Of a DNA stretch of 64,000 nt, positions 9,342 to 54,694 are shown piece by piece. This stretch comes from Tubulanus polymorphus (Eukaryota; Animalia; Nemertea): NCBI RefSeq assembly GCF_964204645.1, contig NC_134034.1, forward strand, positions 13,715,062-13,779,061, given 5' to 3'. The position numbers were made by a program, and so were the translations under genes. Positions within the stretch are counted from its first letter, which is position 1, and every line of letters starts with the position of its first letter. The notes under the pieces were generated by a model. That model had not been told where the DNA came from and made no database searches. It saw only the letters and a program-made list of their open reading frames with translations.

Positions 9342-10006
9342 GTGATCTGGGGTTCCTCCTGAAAATAAAGAAGCCAGCGAGTAGAAGGTATTTTTTACAC
9401 CCTTCACCGGAATATAGGATATAGTTGTGTGATCGGCGGTCAAATTCTACGTGTTGCTAAAATCGTAGTAAAGTACATAATTGGGAAATTCGGTTCCGAT
9501 TCATTCAAACAATCTACAGTCTGAACCGGCAAGCGACTGATTTGGTGTGCTTCATTGCGTATATCAGCCTGAAGCCATCTCATTTTGATACTATCAAACT
9601 TCGTGTCAGAATCGCAACTTTTAGGTGTCAAATTTAAGCACGGTCGTTGTCGGGGGCGATATCGGAATTCAAGCCATTGACGCGAGTATCCTGTGTTTGA
9701 CTCTGATGTTAATGGTCCTCTCCGTCTTAATCCGCGGATTAAGCGATCAACAGTAATTAGATAATGACCGTTTGTAGACACACTTGTAACGCTTTTAACA
9801 GTCGAGATTTAATTCCGATTAAAATCTTTGATGATGAATGAATCGGTGACGGGGGATTGTTTGGGCAACGATGTTAATGTTGTGTGTGCTCTATGGGCAT
9901 AGCAACCGCAATAGCGCGTCGATTTGGAGTTGGACAGGAAATTGTGTAAAACAACATTAACTGAAGTTTCCAACTATGTACTTCGATTTAAACAAAAAAA
10001 TCAGTA

Positions 10007-13815: not shown

Positions 13816-16474
13816 CGACGTAAGAGTAGCTCGAATCTAGTCGTTTGAATCAACAGGATTTGAAATTCACAACGACTATTGTTTAAAAAGGCTATCAACA
13901 ATCATATATCATCTATCACCCCCGTATAATTGCCTCAATAAGGAGGCGGACGAGGACGATATCAATTTCCAGCATCAATTGTTGCATTCGTAGTAATCCT
14001 ATCTACGTCTTGTTTAGCTATACCAAGAACGTCCTTTATGAAAACAACGTAAATCGATATAGGCTCGTCGTGGATCTGTAAACAACATAAACACTGTGTC
14101 ACAGAGAAAGTGTTTCTTAACATCGTCGAATTCGCACCGTACAACAATAGAGAACAACAACACTATACCGCATCGTCACAGAACTCATTCTCAAACTCAT
14201 CTCTCACTGCGCGCTGTATAAATATTGTTTGAGAAAGAGGAATAATATCGATTGTCATCGTCGGACGACGGAAGTGACATCACGTAGGTTTATTTAGCGA
14301 ATTAGTTGGGAATTTCGAGATAAGTGATTTTCGCCACCTATAGACTCGGTCACGTACTCGGTTCGTAGTTCATCGCGGTGTCAGTTTCAATCAAGGTGGT
14401 CTCTCAATTCACGCTCGATTTCGTCTAATCTCTCGTTTTTTTTTCTGTTGCAAAGATTATCATTTCGCCTAAGCCTTTCGCTATTTATGATCCACGCCCC
14501 CGCCCCCCCCCCCGCGCCCCCGCTAACAAGTGAAAAGTAAATAATCATAATCATAAGCATAGTAAATCGGAATTGATAATTTGTGGAGATATATCAAACC
14601 GAGTTTTCAGCATTATATTTGTTTTGAAGATTTAAAGTTATTTATATGCAGAACTGTATGACAATATATACCTGTAAATATCTATTTTCTGTTTGTTCCT
14701 CACAAACCCACCAGGAGCGAAACAGGGGTTTAGGGGTCCATGGATTTGTCAGATTCAGAGTTGGTTGTGAAATTGGTCTATGGACCAATTTTACAGGATT
14801 GGGTCTTCGACTCTGCAACATCAGTTACACGGTTATGCGGGTTTGGTTTTTTACCCTGGATCTAGTTCCATATCCGCTGTGTATAAGGAGCGGTTTACAT
14901 GAAACACATCACCATATTGCATAAATGAAATACTGTTTATCAAAAACAATTTCCCGCAGATTTGAAATCGTCAAAATCTCTATAAAAGTAGATTTAAAAT
15001 CTGTCTAAAATTTGACAAAATGTTCACGTCGCACTAAAAGCGACGATTTTGAAATATCACGACCCGACTGGCCGGATCCCTATCTTAAGAACCAGATGCC
15101 AAACAATCGCAGTTTTCCCAAGCGCATAAACACGGTTTGGTGGACTCAGAAATATCATCTCCGCTCTGTGTAATCAGTGCAGATAGCGTGGCCCCGAGTC
15201 CATGACGTCATCGGACCCCGCCGCCTGATGGTAAGACAAGCGAACAAGATGGCGTTTTTCTCACCGGCCCGAACGAGAATGCCTCGAGTATATGAGATAA
15301 ACATGCAAGCTTGCACATGTTCGGCTCCCTTACTCGACAGAGAGACAGAGAGGCCTCTTTATCACGCGATTTTAACCGAAAGAATTAAACTCTTTAATGT
15401 CACCAATTTTGTGCATCCCCCATCGCGCCAATAAACGACGTCAATTCGAAGCTAATTGAAACAAAGAAAAAGTAATTCACACACAAAACAACTTTTTGAA
15501 TACATTCAAGGAAGGTTTCTGTAGCAATTTGATACATCTCAAAATTCTTCTTTTTTGTATTTGGATCGGAAGGAATTTGAATCAAAAGCTGGAAAAATTA
15601 GTCAGATACAGGAGAGCCCTCTCCAGGCATGTGCTCCACATTCTCAGAGCCCTACACTCACAGCCCCACAAACTCATAGCCCAACACTCTCAGGGCTCCA
15701 CACTCTCAGAGCTCCCTATTCAGAGCGCACTCCTCTCTCAGAACGCGCTTGTTACGTAGTGGTCATTTTGTGTTCTACCTGAACATAAACTCCTCATATC
15801 GTCATACCACCGCTATCGTCTGAAGTGATGGAATTAGAAGCATCCATTTGTTCGTCGATTAATGGCTCATTATTCAGCGGCATCAATTTATCGGTAGACG
15901 AAACGCGTACACGCGGCATATGTTTGTCATTGTCTATAGTTCACATGATTGTCTGTGTCCGTCACATTTTACTCAACGGTTTCTCGATTAACATGTAATT
16001 AAGAGGTAACCCCTGAACGCTTTTACATTACGTAGTTGTGCGGTATTAAGTATTCGATTACTAAAAATCTAAATAAGAAATTGGACAGTCTTATGAGGTT
16101 TGAAATAATTCTCAAAATACGGATGTTGAAAATGCTCATGCAGCTTATGAATAGTCAGCCTTTGATTGATTGGTTATGTTCATTTTGATCATTGCGACAT
16201 TTCTTATGACTTGTATGATGCATATCTTTAAATAGCCCCGTCACAAAAAACCAACAACGCATTCTGTGACTTCCCTCTCTCCATCTCACTCCACCACGGT
16301 TGATACAAACTTGGAGTAATCATCTTACTCCAAGCTACAGGCAAACCCTAAAATCTAACCCTTATAGAGATCATCATTTTTTATTATTCAACGAGTCCAT
16401 GGTGTGATCGGTCATTTTGGCTCGCCTAATTTCTGCATCAAATAAAAAATAGGATCATCCTATATTTTTGAAGT

Positions 16475-16714
16475 TTTTGTTATTTAATCACTTTAATCTT
16501 AATCCTTTAATCTTTATCCTTTGTCATATTCTTGTATGAATATCCTGTTATTTTCTTTTGTACTCAGTACGCCTGATGATGGTTAACAGTTGTTAGCCGA
16601 AACGTCGCTCCTCAAATATAATCATTCTGATATAGAATTTTTCAATCTCGGCTTCGTTATTGTGGGATTTCTCTCGTCATCATCATACACGGATATTGTG
16701 TATCTTCTCGTCTA
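16475..16714 (+). mobile_element. 240-bp hammerhead-bearing insertion (solo Penelope-like pLTR or retrozyme monomer)
   Basis: Flanked by the exact 11-bp direct repeat atttttgaagt (16464-16474 and 16715-16725); contains the hammerhead core; no ORF. Confidence 0.65.
16566..16612 (+). ncRNA. Minimal type I hammerhead ribozyme (Penelope/retrozyme type)
   Basis: CTGATGA (16573-16579), stem II ggttaac/gttagcc with agtt loop (16581-16598), GAAA (16599-16602), then CGTC: vestigial stem III and GUC cleavage triplet. Stem I is weak. Confidence 0.75.
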
Positions 16715-17410
16715 ATTTTTGAAGTGTTTTCCCTGTCAAATTAAATCTAATGAATTTTACGATAATCTGTCATTACGAGTGCTCTCTCAACTCAAAGCAT
16801 AAACCGATGATTCGCTTGAAACAAGCTGATACGATTAAAGTTCTACTGAAATCAAACGAGGAATTTCAAGTAACTAGTTTTCGTGTGGGCGATGATCGAT
16901 TCGTTTAAGAAAAAAAAGCTCCGATAATCGTCGATCGCTTTAAGACGAATATTTGCGCGAACGTTCGTCGCCAAACTCTGAGCCGAAGATTTACAAACGC
17001 GGAAACATCGGCGAAGTTTTTCTTAATCGCCGAAAACCTTTTGATACGGTTTTATGACTCCTCACGCGCCGTGCACCCGCTGCTCGAGAACTGCGACCGT
17101 TTCGTGGTATTTATGCCATCGGCGTTTCCTGATCGATTTCCTCGTCAAACAGACAGCGATAGAGAGAGACCTCGAGTCCATCAGCACTTATCGTCTTCAA
17201 ACTCAATTCGTGTCGCTTAATTACTTGAGTAAATGGCGCGCACCTGCAACGATACTCAAGACTGTAATTGAAACGCCGGTGACAACGCGTGCACGTGTTG
17301 TCGGAATCGAGAAGCGTCTTGAGAGTTGTTTGAGATTATTTCCGGATTCTTTCCTTCCGCGGCGGAAACTGGCGGAAACCAGCCAATATCCGAGGGTCAA
17401 CAAACCCATC

Positions 17411-17426
17411 AGAGACAGAGGCAGAG

Positions 17427-17458
<32 letters not shown>

Positions 17459-17690
17459 AGGGGCACGGGCAGAGGCAGAGGCAGAGGCAGAGGCAGAGGC
17501 AGAGGCAGAGGAGAGTCATAGGGTAGGCCCGAGAGGAGAGATGTGAGAGGGAGAAGAGGGCCCGAGAGAGAGGGGAGAGGTGAGAGGGAGAAGAGGGCCC
17601 GAGAGAGAGGGGAGAGGCATAGAGTGGGCCCGAGAGGGAGGGGAGAGGTGAGAGGGAGAGAGGTAGAGAGGTAGAGGGAGGCAGAGCCGG
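17411..17690. repeat. (AGAGGC)n microsatellite followed by polypurine repeat
   Basis: Direct inspection; source of the GR/QR/LP dipeptide ORFs. Confidence 0.92.
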
Positions 17691-31118: not shown

Positions 31119-32920
31119 TATACGTATATGAACTAGAGCAACTAGTCTCTACAGACAGCATTCCTAGTTCTCCGATACGCGTGTGTGAATAACCGACTTC
31201 GCACTAGCACCACCTAGCGGATACATGGTTCACCTGTCAGATGGTTTTCAAATAAGCGATCTCTTTATTTCAATGTCGTATATTTGACAAAGCGCCGTTC
31301 CGTTCATCTTTTTTTATGAGCGAATGATTGATTTGTATTCATTAACACCTTTGTTTGCAGAAGAGATTCGCGGGAGACCTTTAATTAAACCTTAACACAA
31401 CCGTCAACACGTTTCATCACGTTACCGTACGCCAGCGCGCACGTGCTGCCCTCTATTGTTATCGATCGGGCGCACGTCCACTGATTAAACATGAAGTGAA
31501 AATCGATCGTTTCGTGTTTGGCGATAAATTTCGTATGGTGCCGTTTTTCCAGGTAAAGCGAGAACGCGCCGCGCGTCTGGTCGAATTATACACGTTCTCG
31601 TTGTTTTCTCTTTCTCGGCTCGGTCGCGTAACACGTGACCCGCGGTAGTAAAATAGTCCAGATATCCATACGCGATTCGTACGCAGCGTTGGTTGCCATG
31701 TGCAGAGGATTTCCTATTAAAAACAATTAACCCTGTTGTTGTCCTCGTTAATGGATACGGCACCTTAAACTTGATTTCGTATCGGGCTCCTTACGAGGCA
31801 ACTGTGGAAACTGATTTGACGACATTTAAGATGATCTTAACGATGTGAAATTAAGGGAAAGTAGAGAAAACATAAATCTTTCTTCCATGTTGATGGCGTC
31901 AGCAGCGGTACGATAGAAAACTAACCAGCATCATGGACACTTTTAGTATCTGGTTACGAAAGCTATTTTCACGCCACCGACCTGCCAATCTTTCGCGGAC
32001 TCCTGCAATCAATCTTTCCCACCTTCGGTTTTAGACCTGAAAGGTTGCAATTCCGAGTGGATGAGTTTTCACGATGTCTGTCTCGACGAAAAGGGCAAAC
32101 TCAATGGGAAGGCTTCACCAAGATTCTTAGTTTCTGATGTACCACTGAGTTGGTTACACTAGGATCGTAGAGCAACGCAGAGCACTGTGGAGACAGCCAG
32201 GGCTGGGTGTATGGGAAGGCATGGTCCACACCCCGAGACCACCCCTAAATCCGCCCCGATACGGAAACATGGTTCTGTTTCCTGTTTCCGTGTTTCTCTG
32301 CTGAGCTTAACCACCGTTACAATATTGCCGACGATTTCTAGGTGGAAATAATGTCATCAGCGGCTATAGAACTAACCTATAGATTCAAACCGCGGTCACG
32401 TGATACGTACGACATAGTACGGCACGTGACCTCGAGGACACGCGTGGCAACGGGCATCGAATAGGCTTTTTATTGCCGGTGTCGGCGCGTGCAGGTTTTT
32501 TTATTCGGGAAGGCGTGAACTATAGTTTAATCAAAGTTTGAATGCGTCATTAATCGACATTTGCTCCAGTTTCAGTCGTGGGTCACGGGTAAAATCGAGT
32601 CACCTGCTTAAACGTGTCACAATCGAATCCGTTAAACGCGTGTCGACCCTATACACCTCTATACATCATTAAACGCAATAAAAGTTAATGTGGTCTTTAA
32701 ATGACATTAAATTAATGTTCTTACGTTTTTTTCGTAGTAAATAGAAATTCACAATACGATTTACACGAACGGCTGAATTATTTTCCGAATGATATTCAAG
32801 TCTTTTAGGTTTATTGTGACAAACTCGAGGTTTCACAAAGGCAAAATGAGTACAAAAAAACAGAACAAAAGTTGATCGTTTACGTTTATTGCGATAAAGG
32901 CAATGTGAGATAAAAACCAG

Positions 32921-43735: not shown

Positions 43736-46700
43736 GATAGGTGTCGTTGTTGCAGGTTGTTTTTGGTCCAGGCCTGTAAAACGTGTTTTTTATCAGCTCG
43801 AATCCGTTTTCCTATTGTCGTGATGAAAACAGCGTGGAGTCTGGTCGAACTACTGCATGCGAGATGATTATTATCAAATCTTGTTCTATATAATTACACC
43901 GCAAATATTGCGGAATAATATCGGGTTTATGATGAAACGGCCCCCCGTGGGGAGGTCGCCACGTGTGCCCCACTTGATTATAGACATTTCATTTAATTAA
44001 AAATAACCACATGGATCTTCGTTAAACATGTCTATGGGCCGCCGATCCTATTTTATGTTTTTTAGGTTCTGTACCTAGCGACACCTTCGTTCATGTCGAT
44101 AGTTGCGAATTTATTCGCTCTTACGGCATAGGGCGCGGGGGGATTCCTGCACTTATTGGGTGTATTCTTAAGATAGATTATAACACAATGACCCCCCTCT
44201 CCCCCCCTCCCAGAGAGAAATGATCAGCTTGAACAATTCTCCACTGAAGGACTCACGGTATAGGAACTGATTTTTACTCCAGCACTTCGTTTCCCCTTTC
44301 ATCGTTTTTAACTCATAAATTACACTAAATACAAAAAAATGAACAGCATCATAGAAAAAAGCATTGAAAAAAAGAACTATTCTTTTAATATTTCGTGAAA
44401 AAAGCTTCCCGCATTCCAGGTAGAATATGTATAGATTTTATTATCGTATTTTTTTTTCAAAATAAATGCAACAAGTGTTCATCCATTAGTTTTAAATGTA
44501 CAACATTGTCTTATAAAAATACTATTTTATCGAAGACTCATTGGCTTCACTTTCCATCATGAACCATTCATTAATATTTCAAGATGGTTGCTTATTCAAT
44601 TGTAAAATTTTTTAGATTAGGCTGAAATAAAATGATACCTTGTTCCTAATCGGCGCCGGGCTATTTTTGTAAACAGCAATACAATTCGTAATCAGTTCAA
44701 TTCTATAGATACAGGGTCTGTTACGGTTTATCTTGATCATGATTTTAAAAAGGGGTATTAATAGGCGGCCGGATGGGTCAACTTTCAAGCTCAGCAGAAA
44801 TGAGAGACAAGGTATCAAACTTTTTTAGCCTTTTACATATTAGATATGAACATAGACGTTTTCGATTGATAGCTGGCGAATCTAGGATTAACAAAGCCAT
44901 GGCTCAAATAGAAAAAGGCATTTTTAACCATAATCGCTTGGATCGAGGACTTGGAGCTTTTGAAGCACGAAAACTGTTAATACAAAATGTATCTCGGTAA
45001 CGACATACATTTATAGAAAAAAGTCCGATCTAAATTCGAAGTTTTAGGTTCTGAATCCCTTTGATTAATAGTATACAATATGACTAGTCTTTTACTCAGT
45101 CCCTTTTTATTTGTGAATATATTTAGAGAATATTTTCATAATTCCTACATTCCCCGAAACACGAACGCATAAAATTGAATATTTCAAGACGGATTACAGG
45201 TAAACCCCATTCATTCTTTAAGTACTATAAGTTATCGATGTAAGTTAATAGATAAATAAACATTCTTTCTTTCTGTTGATTTTTACAGTTATAAGTTATG
45301 TGGCCTTATTTACAATACAGCGATGAATTATACCTAATCTACAGCCTTGAACCTGCATCCCTCAGCATCCACGTTCAAGTAATCCAGGCTTTACGATCTT
45401 GTCGTTCAGTCTTAACGTGTGCTGAGAATTTCGCCCGAAACATTTCTAAATTGAAAATGATCTATAATCATCAGGCAATGGAACATTATCAGCAAACTTT
45501 AAAGAAGCGATCGTCCAAACTTAACGTGCGTTCTGGATTTTAAATTGTAAACGAACCAACAAATTAGCTTCAGACATCAGACATTTTGTCGGCACACTTC
45601 CAAAAGTGCTCGTCAGGACTGAACGTTTGTTTAGGACTTTGTCCGAGACATTTTTGATTGAAAATGAACGAAGAAATGAACATCGAACACGTGACATTCG
45701 ATATTAATACACTTTCTCATATCTATGACAACAATCTACAGTGCTTGTGGGTGGTTGGGGTGGTGGTGGATGAGGAGGGGGTCCAAACTGCAGATAGATA
45801 CCTGCGTTCGAATCAAACTTATCGCTCATGCTTTAGAATTTGTATTTACATAAAAATATGTTATTTACATATGGCAGTGCGTAGAAAGGGCTAGTCGTTA
45901 TTCTGAGATTAAAAATACAGACAGATACTTTCAAACCCTGACCCAGAATATACATCAACACACACAGGCTCCAGAACTAAATCCCATCGTATGAGTCCAA
46001 GTCGAGAGCTCACAAGCCACCAGCTCTACCACCAGATGGCGCGTGTAACAATAGAACAACACTTGGATCGTAGTACATTTTAAATCCACTTTCATCTTGA
46101 TTTTTAGCCTCCTAAATCAGGCAGATTGATAAACTCGTGTCTCTTGCTGAACTCAATTCATATTTAGGCCTCAAATACAGCGCGAATTCAGTTCATCATT
46201 CATAGAATTTGCGAAATAATTGCGGATAGATTTTGATTTAATCAGAAAAAAAATCCGACAACGTTGTCCGAATGCACACTGTTGCCACCTGGTGGATCCA
46301 CGCTTGCATCAAGTGGAATCCCCGATTGCCACAGTTAGCTACGGAGTCCTCGTTACGCTTTCACTGAAGAGCTAACATGAGGGCGAATAGGGAGCAGTGG
46401 ATTGAACCCAATCAGTCGATTACTACGTGTAGTTAGTTGTATTGAAAATACATTTTTGAGCCGCGAGTAAAATATCGAACACTGATTATGACGACGATGA
46501 ATTCATGGAGGTTTGTTTAAAGTCATGTTTTTGATCAAAGAACGACACAAACGTTTTACAATGAGATTCTTTAACCTTAGAATAGTCAAACAAATTAATA
46601 TTCATACCTATAATTATATATATGATAATAATGATATTATAATAACAATTTTCTCTATCTTTGGAAGCACTTTTTGAATGTCAATATAAGAATTGAATGA

Positions 46701-52567: not shown

Positions 52568-53770
52568 CCGGCTTCATGACGTGTTTAATAGAAAACAGAT
52601 ATGGAGTTTGTACACGATACACTAATGTCGAAAACTGATTAGAAAACTGAAAATAATTTCGTAAAACTCTGGACACTCAAAGCTACATACAAAAAATGAT
52701 CATAGAGACTAACGAACGTCCCAAATAAACCGAAAATTTATTAATCTTTTGTGACAGACGATGATGATTTTAAACTTAACATTTCCTTCAAGATATCTCA
52801 TCTATACAGATTCCTTACGCGAAGAACAGACACGTTTAATACCCATAGAATTTAGAAAAAATTCAATATCGAATTTAAAAATCTAACAACGATCTCTAGT
52901 GAGCGTTCGAAACGTCGTCATTTTGTGTTAATTTTTGATAGATAAAATTCGATTTTAATTTTCTGAATTCTGTATATAACGTGGGCTTCAAACTTATTTC
53001 ACCGAATGTATTTATACACACAGATACACTCGATGATATTACTATACAATACATTGTTGATACACGTCGTCGACGAATCTGATAAAATAGTAAATCGTTT
53101 TGTTATCGCGAGTACCGATAACTTTCGAATTAAACTAGCAATAATTAACTGATAAAACGCTATATGTTCGAATGATCAGATTTATTTGCGAACTCTGCTG
53201 ACGAGTTTTATTTTCATTCGACCAGGATTTTAGCAGTTAAAGCAAAGGTTGTTGATCGAAATTTGAAGGAATCGTAGGCACAAAACGTGTATTTTCAACT
53301 GGATCCTAAACATCTGGCGGACAACATTTCAAAAGGCCAGAATCATAACATATATGTCTAAAAGCATTTTGGTTTAAAGATTCGAAACTGCACTTTGAAC
53401 AATCTTTAATCTCATCTTTAAAAAAAAACTTAATCTGTGGTTAAATCGATACAATTTCTCCACCGTTCCAGTTCAGTTTAGGATGAGTTTGTCCTTTGTA
53501 AAAAGAGACGCAGTTTTATAAATGAATATATCAATGACTAGTAGAGAGATTCAGTATTCGGAGATGCGGTAAATTAATGACTTAATGATTTATTCTGATC
53601 TGTCACAGTTTCGAAGTTTTTACTAAACTTCATCATCCGTGAACATTATCATATTATTTTGGTGTCTCCGATGATGGAGTTTACAAAAACTCCGATTAAC
53701 TGTCATAGACCGGAATAAATAATCACGTGATCGACAGTAGATTTAGTTAATATGAACACGTCCAGCTTAC

Positions 53771-54239
53771 CTCTGTGATAATTAATGATGACTTTTCTCG
53801 GCTGTTCACCGCACTGATTGTTAATGTTCTCTTTAGCGTGAATGTCCGATTGAACGAGTTCGTTAAGGAAACTGATGTAACCGATCGCTAACCGAAGCGT
53901 GTCCACTTTCGACAGTCGTTTTTCGTACGGTAACGTCGGAATATGGGCACGTAATCCTTCAAACGCTTCGTTAATCGACAACATCCGTTTACGTTCTCTT
54001 AAATTTGCCGCCTGGCGTTGTTGGACCTGTTGTTGGGGACACCGGCGCCGCCGACGCCTCGTCTTACCGCCCACCGGTTGAGGGGTATCGCCCGGGTCGT
54101 GCGAGGTCGACGTTTGATAGCTGGACTCCGAGGAAGCGATCGAAGCCGTCTCGATATCCGTGCTACCTCCGTGATACTGACCAGTGCCGTAATCGTGTAA
54201 AAATTGCCGATTTACGGCGTCCAAATCCAAATTCTCCAT
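53771..54239 (-). CDS. Ptf1a: Ptf1a/Fer1 bHLH transcription factor, coding exon 1
   Basis: ATG in strong context (GCCATGG) at 54239. Encodes [51 protein letters not shown], the Ptf1a-type bHLH. Ends at KVIINYHR G|gtaagc (phase 1 donor at 53770). An in-frame upstream ATG at 54278 could add 13 aa. Confidence 0.96.
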
Positions 54240-54354
54240 GGCACCCCGATTACCGCGATAAACGGTGAGATTTTTCATAAATATAATGACGTTTTGATGA
54301 AGATGTCTTGTTTTGTGTTGCGTCAATTTAACGCGCGTTTTCTGAGCGGTGTTT

Positions 54355-54694
54355 GTTATATCCGGTGAGCCGAGCGCTCGGTCGCGTGTCGCTTTCTCGT
54401 CGTCCACCAATCAGCGCCGCTCAGACGACCGAATGGGCGTGGCTTACGAGTGGAAACCCGATCTGGATATCGTCGATTCGTTCGTAAAGTAAATAAATGC
54501 AAGTGTCGCCGTTCTCACCGGGACAGCGGTGCAGATACAAAACGGCTGGAAAACAGTAGTTAGTGAAGGAAGTATAGGTGAGATACGACAATCTGGATCC
54601 CATCGGGTGCGGTTCCCACATACTAAAAAATACGGATAGCAAGAGAGAGAGAGGGAGAGAGGGAGAGAGAGAGGGAGGGAGGGAGGGAGAGGGA
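54355..54694 (-). promoter_or_regulatory. Putative Ptf1a proximal promoter
   Basis: TATA-like TATAAC (54360-54355), CCAAT box (54407-54411), GC box GGGCGTGGC (54435-54443), Su(H)/RBPJ consensus TGTGGGAA (54620-54613) and a GA/CT-rich tract (54642-54694) in plausible order upstream of the ATG. TSS not known. Confidence 0.55.

Follow-up and report, generated by a model that had tools for sequence, protein, structure and literature searches.

Introduction

Penelope-like elements (PLEs) of the endonuclease-bearing kind (EN+) are defined by the pairing of a reverse transcriptase (RT) with a GIY-YIG endonuclease, and their pseudo-long terminal repeats (pseudo-LTRs, pLTRs) are a known location of minimal hammerhead ribozymes (min-HHRs), a motif type described in 2014 (Cervera and De la Pena 2014, PMC4209133). 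The min-HHRs mostly possess a helix I of 4-5 bp, which is reduced to 2 bp in a Drosophila virilis PLE variant, and in published work they cleave weakly in vitro, as dimers (PMC4209133). In a PLE of Anolis, cleavage occurs only with the element protein, depends on C3 and G8 and is dispensable for insertion in vitro; RT begins in this element at two adjacent internal start sites with a 'tail' between them (PMC11167929). Inverted 5'-truncated partners and a tail present at one end only are also published features of PLEs (PMC8557442, PMC3846280). Here, we analyse a segment located at positions 16473-16719 (+ strand) of a 64,000-nucleotide stretch of the nemertean Tubulanus polymorphus genome (contig NC_134034.1; this whole stretch is referred to below as the window), for which an original prediction made from the letters alone had proposed a hammerhead-carrying 240-bp unit of a separate non-autonomous retroelement family. 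We report that the locus is of an already known kind, namely a pLTR of a PLE, truncated and bearing a minimal hammerhead of the PLE type, and that the segment is very probably a solo, 5'-truncated insertion of one PLE family (hereafter family A) rather than a self-contained 240-bp unit.

The motif in the window resembles the published PLE min-HHRs (PMC4209133) in its CUGAUGA and GAAA boxes and 7-bp helix II, in the unpaired nucleotide between A9 and G10.1, in the G10.1-C11.1 pair, in its pLTR location, and in the absence of helix III combined with a palindromic CG at 15.2-16.2; the relatives of the copy are, as in the published elements, mostly solo and truncated, with opposite-strand pairs about 100 bp apart. 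It differs from them in its host, which is new, and in the helix I of family A, which has only 2 bp. With published PLEs in general, the families described below share one open reading frame (ORF) in which RT precedes GIY-YIG, partial tandems forming pLTRs, variable-length duplications at AT-rich target sites, a pair of neighbouring internal RT start sites, and a TATA box plus initiator in the pLTR; at the family level they also share the adjacent inverted 5'-truncated copy and the 30-40-nt tail at one end, the window copy itself being solo and tailed. The nemertean elements have their RT start sites immediately before the ATG, in contrast to the Anolis element, whose sites are located 111-118 nt into the ORF.

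Animal non-LTR retrozymes (Cervera and De la Pena 2020, PMC7229834; Li et al. 2026 preprint) are similar in that they lack an ORF, carry a type I hammerhead, are related to PLE pLTRs and depend on retrotransposon enzymes. However, those elements form tandem arrays, from which monomers are excised by the flanking hammerheads and circularised (PMC7229834), whereas the window holds a solo truncated copy with a single hammerhead, and no family A copy was seen to have a boundary at the cleavage site. The main value of our finding lies in correct annotation, as a hammerhead accompanied by a target-site duplication could be mistaken for a new ribozyme retroelement.

The Window Segment and Its Target Site

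A search of the genome with a 262-nt query (16464-16725) gave 999 candidates, 47 of which were scored, and revealed that the segment is not single-copy but a dispersed repeat. Homology to the other copies, to which the window copy is ~95% identical, spans 16473-16719. The 3' end (...TCGTCTAAT) is common to the copies, whereas their 5' ends differ, extending at least 1.6 kb upstream, and most of them reach further upstream than the window copy. Such a combination of a fixed 3' end with varied 5' ends is the pattern of 5'-truncated retrotransposition.

The segment is flanked by an exact 11-bp direct repeat, ATTTTTGAAGT, present at 16464-16474 on the left and at 16715-16725 on the right, just as the original prediction had it. 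The last 1-2 nt of the left repeat (GT) and the first 2 nt of the right one (AT, matching the terminal AAT of the element) also match the element; hence, given this microhomology at the junctions, 9-11 bp are target-derived, and the homology edges 16473 and 16719 lie 2-5 nt or less from the inner edges of the direct repeat. Both flanks were searched in the genome and are unique, and no paralogous empty site was found. Other copies are bounded by flanking repeats of 12 bp (locus L024) or, around 29 paired insertions, of 5-15 bp (7-15 bp in 26 of the 29), and this variable duplication length fits target-primed reverse transcription and published PLEs. The proposal of an ORF-less, retrotransposed insertion with a target-site duplication is therefore borne out.

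Relation to PLE Coding Sequence

The sister family B, whose DNA is 75-80% identical to that of family A, contains at locus L043 a 796-aa ORF that matches RVT_1 (E 3.7e-12) and GIY-YIG (E 4.6e-06). This locus consists of two ORF units in tandem with an untranslated spacer between them. Sequence homologous to the window segment makes up the final ~250 nt of this spacer and stops 2-5 nt short of the next ATG, and this position identifies the window segment as the 3' half of a pLTR. Direct-orientation hammerheads are also found 2857 bp apart on contig C1. Longer family A copies run upstream into sequence that matches aa 241-796 of the family B ORF, in several frames and with frameshifts. Thus, the link to an ORF combining RT with GIY-YIG, which the original prediction had envisaged, is present, while the idea of a 240-bp unit belonging to a separate non-autonomous family does not hold, since longer copies continue into PLE coding sequence; nor are there tandem arrays at the locus, where no tandem copy of the unit was found. 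A 5' boundary midway through the RT domain that many copies seemed to share was rejected, as it stemmed from a reference copy that is itself truncated, and other copies go on upstream.

The intact family B ORF occurs in at least four genome copies. Another family, E, comprises at least ten uninterrupted frames of ~833 aa (loci L132-L135) with 68% amino-acid identity to family B, and seems, of all PLEs in this genome, to have been active most recently. As a separate observation, the 5' flank of the PLE copy at L031 holds about seven repeats in 16 kb (81-90% identity; G000:C7:1303440-1319299), a local tandem duplication.

Within this framework, the 5' end of the window copy lies 93 nt upstream of the transcription start predicted for the element, and its 3' end coincides with the distal RT start site. 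It carries a degenerate TATA box at 16535-16542 (+), reading TATGAATA instead of the TATAAATA seen in families A and B, 31 nt upstream of A16566. This adenine belongs to an initiator-like TCAGTAC (16564-16570, +) and is the predicted transcription start, i.e., the predicted RNA 5' end, 7 nt before the hammerhead core. Further downstream, a 3' block common to the PLE families (16661-16716, +; 93% identity) includes a small hairpin (16686-16702) and both RT start motifs on the + strand, CTCTCGT at the proximal site (last nucleotide 16677) and TCGTCTAAT at the distal site (last nucleotide 16716). Between the two start sites lies the PLE 'tail' of ~38 nt (16678-16716, +; compare PMC11167929 and PMC8557442), which is retained in the window copy.

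The Hammerhead Motif

The minimal hammerhead motif occupies 16573-16606 (+) and is recognised by its sequence, by pattern searches and by covariation. The core predicted to be intact (CUGAUGA, a 7-bp stem II, GAAA and CGUC) is present in full: the catalytic box CTGATGA (16573-16579) is followed by an unpaired T (16580) and by a helix II in which GGTTAAC (16581-16587) pairs with GTTAGCC (16592-16598) over 7 bp, including one G.U, around the loop AGTT (16588-16591), and then by GAAA (16599-16602) and CGTC (16603-16606). All required boxes are found, i.e., C3-A9 as CUGAUGA, G12-A14 plus A15.1 as GAAA, U16.1 and C17 (H17, not G), and cleavage is predicted after 16606. Helix III is absent, and the palindromic CG at 15.2-16.2 (A-CG-U) makes a 4-bp ACGU/ACGU duplex possible between two copies. 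The sequence thus agrees with the predicted PLE-type minimal type I hammerhead lacking a real helix III.

When the 34-nt core was searched with up to three mismatches, it occurred 282 times in the 268-Mb genome, compared with none for a reversed control. A pattern in which the boxes and the outermost GG..CC pairs of helix II alone were fixed (GG..CC/GAAACGUH type) yielded 666 genome matches vs. none in the reversed control, and one with a 3-nt insert at helix III (GAAACNGU type) yielded 90 vs. one; close opposite-strand pairs are common among these matches. Within the window, the bare boxes match at three places (0.21 expected), and only 16573-16606 has a helix II, in line with the prediction of a single hammerhead copy there. 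Judging from these searches and from the covariation described below, the window motif is not a chance match. The two other bare-box matches, at 32330-32360 and 45439-45474 (both on the - strand and without helix II), are probably chance occurrences or badly decayed copies.

Hammerhead Lineages and Covariation

At least five min-HHR lineages exist side by side in this genome. Helix II reads GGCUAAC/GUUAGCC in family A, GGCUAA/UUAGCC in family B and GGCUGUU/AACAGCC in family C; group D has GAGGUUU-type helices with GAAACUGU, and the fifth lineage, family E, has a CUGAAGA core. Among rows preselected by a filter for a helix II of at least 5 bp, 93% of the helix II cells pair in the alignment of families A-C, with four of seven pairs changed on both sides, and 96% pair in the alignment of group D, with three of seven pairs so changed, compared with only 19-63% in slid controls. 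The two sets were aligned separately because MAFFT put a joint alignment of all hammerhead families out of register. The three major helix II variants were also recovered by a pattern that fixes only the two outermost pairs (GG..CC) and leaves the other five free. The stem II covariation anticipated for a functional motif is therefore found both in families A-C and in group D, and the genome adds to the animals in which several co-existing PLE families have covarying hammerheads.

Helix I varies in length between the lineages, all family A copies having 2 bp, family B 3 bp, family C 4 bp, group D mostly 4-5 bp (range 1-5) and family E 6 bp. Hence, the poor pairing of stem I noted in the original prediction is real, with only 2 bp, but does not mark decay of this particular copy, as it is a family-wide property. 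When families A and B are compared segment by segment, identity reaches 90% from the transcription start to H17 and 93% in the 3' block, whereas it is 80% from the TATA box to the start and 52-56% in the other pLTR segments. The hammerhead and the 3' block are thus far more conserved than the rest of the pLTR, which indicates selection on the hammerhead motif in active elements.

A retrozyme-like arrangement was encountered elsewhere in the genome: L071:1-455 (G000:C10:12999500-13002000) is a 69-bp tandem repeat, with 6.5 copies in the retrieved stretch, and its unit carries the CUGAAGA-type hammerhead of PLE family E, not that of family A. It is adjoined by an unrelated 37-bp satellite of 13 copies (L071:924-1407).

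Ends, Pairs and Tails of Family A Copies

The ends of family A copies were surveyed in 60 perfect-core copies (L072-L131, contigs C1-C10), taken in list order from the core search. In 54 of them the 5' end falls within -5 to +7 nt of the A in TCAGTAC, and in the longer copies of families A and B TATAAATA stands 31 nt upstream of the same A. Given these clustered 5' ends, along with the upstream TATA box, we predict that transcription starts, and the element RNA begins, at the A of TCAGTAC. Families C and E likewise show an initiator-like TCA, the A of which precedes the core by 7 nt, and a TATA-like box ~30 nt upstream; the arrangement in families A, B, C and E was observed at loci L031 (minus strand, ~9715-9760), L043 and L132-L136. 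Since this A is located exactly 7 nt before the core, helix I would be made of the first nucleotides of the predicted transcript.

The 3' ends of the 60 copies form two classes 38 nt apart, 37 ending at the proximal CTCTCGT and 19 at the distal TCGTCTAAT. Most young family A copies are short, comprising 113-152 bp from the predicted transcription start to either RT start site, as are about nine in ten of the perfect-core ones when further listed copies are counted in; the window copy belongs to the minority that reaches upstream of the predicted start. A head-to-head inverted partner accompanies 41 of the 60 copies, and the arms of 33 of the 37 informative pairs differ in their 3' ends, proximal in one and distal in the other, so that only one arm bears the tail. 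The inverted pairs each possess their own flanking duplication and hence represent independent single insertions. The arm with the tail often extends only 8-24 nt beyond the proximal site before it stops; this, together with the restriction of the tail to one arm, is compatible with a pair of polymerases moving one behind the other along a single RNA. Only 2 of 41 inner arm ends are situated 2 nt or less from the cleavage site. Cleaved RNA was rejected as the template, as none of the 47 scored matches starts at that site, and snap-back self-priming of the inverted pairs was considered less probable than priming on both strands, in view of the fixed outer and variable inner ends.

We tentatively speculate, with less than even confidence, that family A copies record PLE integration as it happens in vivo. 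The RNA would start 7 nt before the core and contribute its first nucleotides to helix I, RT would usually begin at the first pLTR-ORF junction and so give abortive insertions of 113-152 bp, and both target strands would be primed, using one RT start site each. If true, this would provide in vivo support for, and a refinement of, the dimeric two-strand model derived from in vitro work on the Anolis element. The young, independent and short family A copies with their clean boundaries constitute a natural data set on the RNA start, the RT start and the inverted, tailed insertions of PLEs.

Weighing of Alternative Explanations

Several results weigh against the interpretation of the locus as a fragment of a PLE with a genuine hammerhead. 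At the gathering threshold, an Rfam scan of the whole window lists no hammerhead family, and a scan of 16400-16800 (a 401-nt query) gives no hammerhead match even at E<=10. Minimum-free-energy folds of the monomer and of the dimer (ViennaRNA) do not adopt the hammerhead conformation, and the 2-bp helix I of family A falls short of the 4-5 bp that are the norm for min-HHRs. None of the 47 scored matches begins at the hammerhead cleavage site, and the 57 candidates scored, out of 1583, include no intact family A ORF. As regards Rfam, the motif shares the catalytic boxes and the type I topology with Hammerhead_1 (RF00163) and other hammerhead families, but these models presuppose a helix III and a longer helix I; the missing match at E<=10 hence reflects the models' limited reach where helix III is lacking and is not evidence against the motif. 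Those same nulls, the short helix I, the absent helix III, the folds that are not hammerhead-shaped and the poor cleavage of published min-HHRs in vitro would also suit a merely accidental likeness to a hammerhead, without RNA function, within a conserved stretch of pLTR DNA or a protein-binding site. We consider this very improbable: compensatory changes keep helix II paired in at least four PLE families while the boxes remain invariant, the two genome patterns give 666 and 90 matches vs. 0 and 1 in their controls, a like architecture has been published for the PLEs of many animals, and in one PLE cleavage that depends on C3 and G8 takes place in the presence of the element protein.

The lack of an intact family A ORF among the scored candidates bears on the possibility that the locus descends from an independent non-autonomous ribozyme retroelement of the retrozyme or short interspersed element (SINE) kind, with short masters of its own, which PLE enzymes would mobilise in trans, and possibly with propagation through circular RNA. 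Such an origin would account for the hundreds of ORF-less hammerhead units; trans-mobilisation is feasible, as family B, in which the ORF is intact, has a nearly identical 3' block, and the Li et al. 2026 preprint describes animal retrozymes derived from PLE pLTRs. Family A may indeed be mobilised in trans at present. Nevertheless, we regard an independent element as unlikely, because the window copy extends 93 nt above the usual 5' end into pLTR collinear with ORF-bearing copies, the unit is not tandem at the window locus, and the short units lack a TATA box, which lies upstream of their 5' end, and are therefore better explained as by-products of PLE transcripts than as masters. Moreover, no copy ends at the cleavage site, contrary to what a processed circular or monomeric RNA template would leave. 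The head-to-head inverted pairs within direct repeats (41 of the 60 copies) could instead suggest a DNA transposon of the foldback type, or one resembling a miniature inverted-repeat transposable element, with a hammerhead-like sequence in its terminal inverted repeats and the window holding half an element. This we find scarcely credible: the duplications vary from 5 to 15 bp, unlike the products of a transposase, the inner arm ends vary whereas the outer ones are fixed at two RNA-defined sites, and the arms are homologous to the untranslated region of an element encoding RT and GIY-YIG. Furthermore, the duplication in the window encloses a single arm, and neither a transposase ORF between the arms nor a duplication of fixed length was seen.

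Proposed History of the Window Copy

With the truncated PLE insertion as the preferred explanation, a history can be proposed from the anatomy of the locus. The GIY-YIG endonuclease of the element would have nicked an AT-rich target, and RT would have begun inside the element RNA at the distal of the two start sites, just before the start codon of the ORF of the tandem unit. Approximately 247 nt of the pseudo-LTR would then have been copied before an early stop, and the ends may have been joined via 1-2 nt of microhomology, leaving the target-site duplication of 9-11 bp. In intact elements the hammerhead would occupy +8 to +41 of the predicted transcript, and cleavage would be expected after GUC, probably as a dimer held by the 4-bp intermolecular ACGU/ACGU helix III and/or with the assistance of protein.

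The window copy differs from the other family A copies by a C-to-T change in helix II, which gives rise to its one G.U pair, and it contains no ORF. Cleavage by this copy alone is not expected, since it has no helix III. No second helix-II-bearing hammerhead exists within the window, and the lack of a dimer partner, along with the mutated TATA box, suggests that the copy is probably inert. Hence, as far as its sequence allows us to judge, it is probably a remnant in which the hammerhead is merely a passenger.

Other Features of the Window

A 155-aa ORF (17054-17663, +), with no Pfam match, is located 330 bp downstream of the PLE fragment and runs into 18 CAGAGG hexamers and GA-rich repeats of 31-68 bp. 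A 235-aa ORF at 53703-54410 (-) matches the Pfam HLH domain (E 3e-20) and probably represents an exon from a gene for a bHLH transcription factor.

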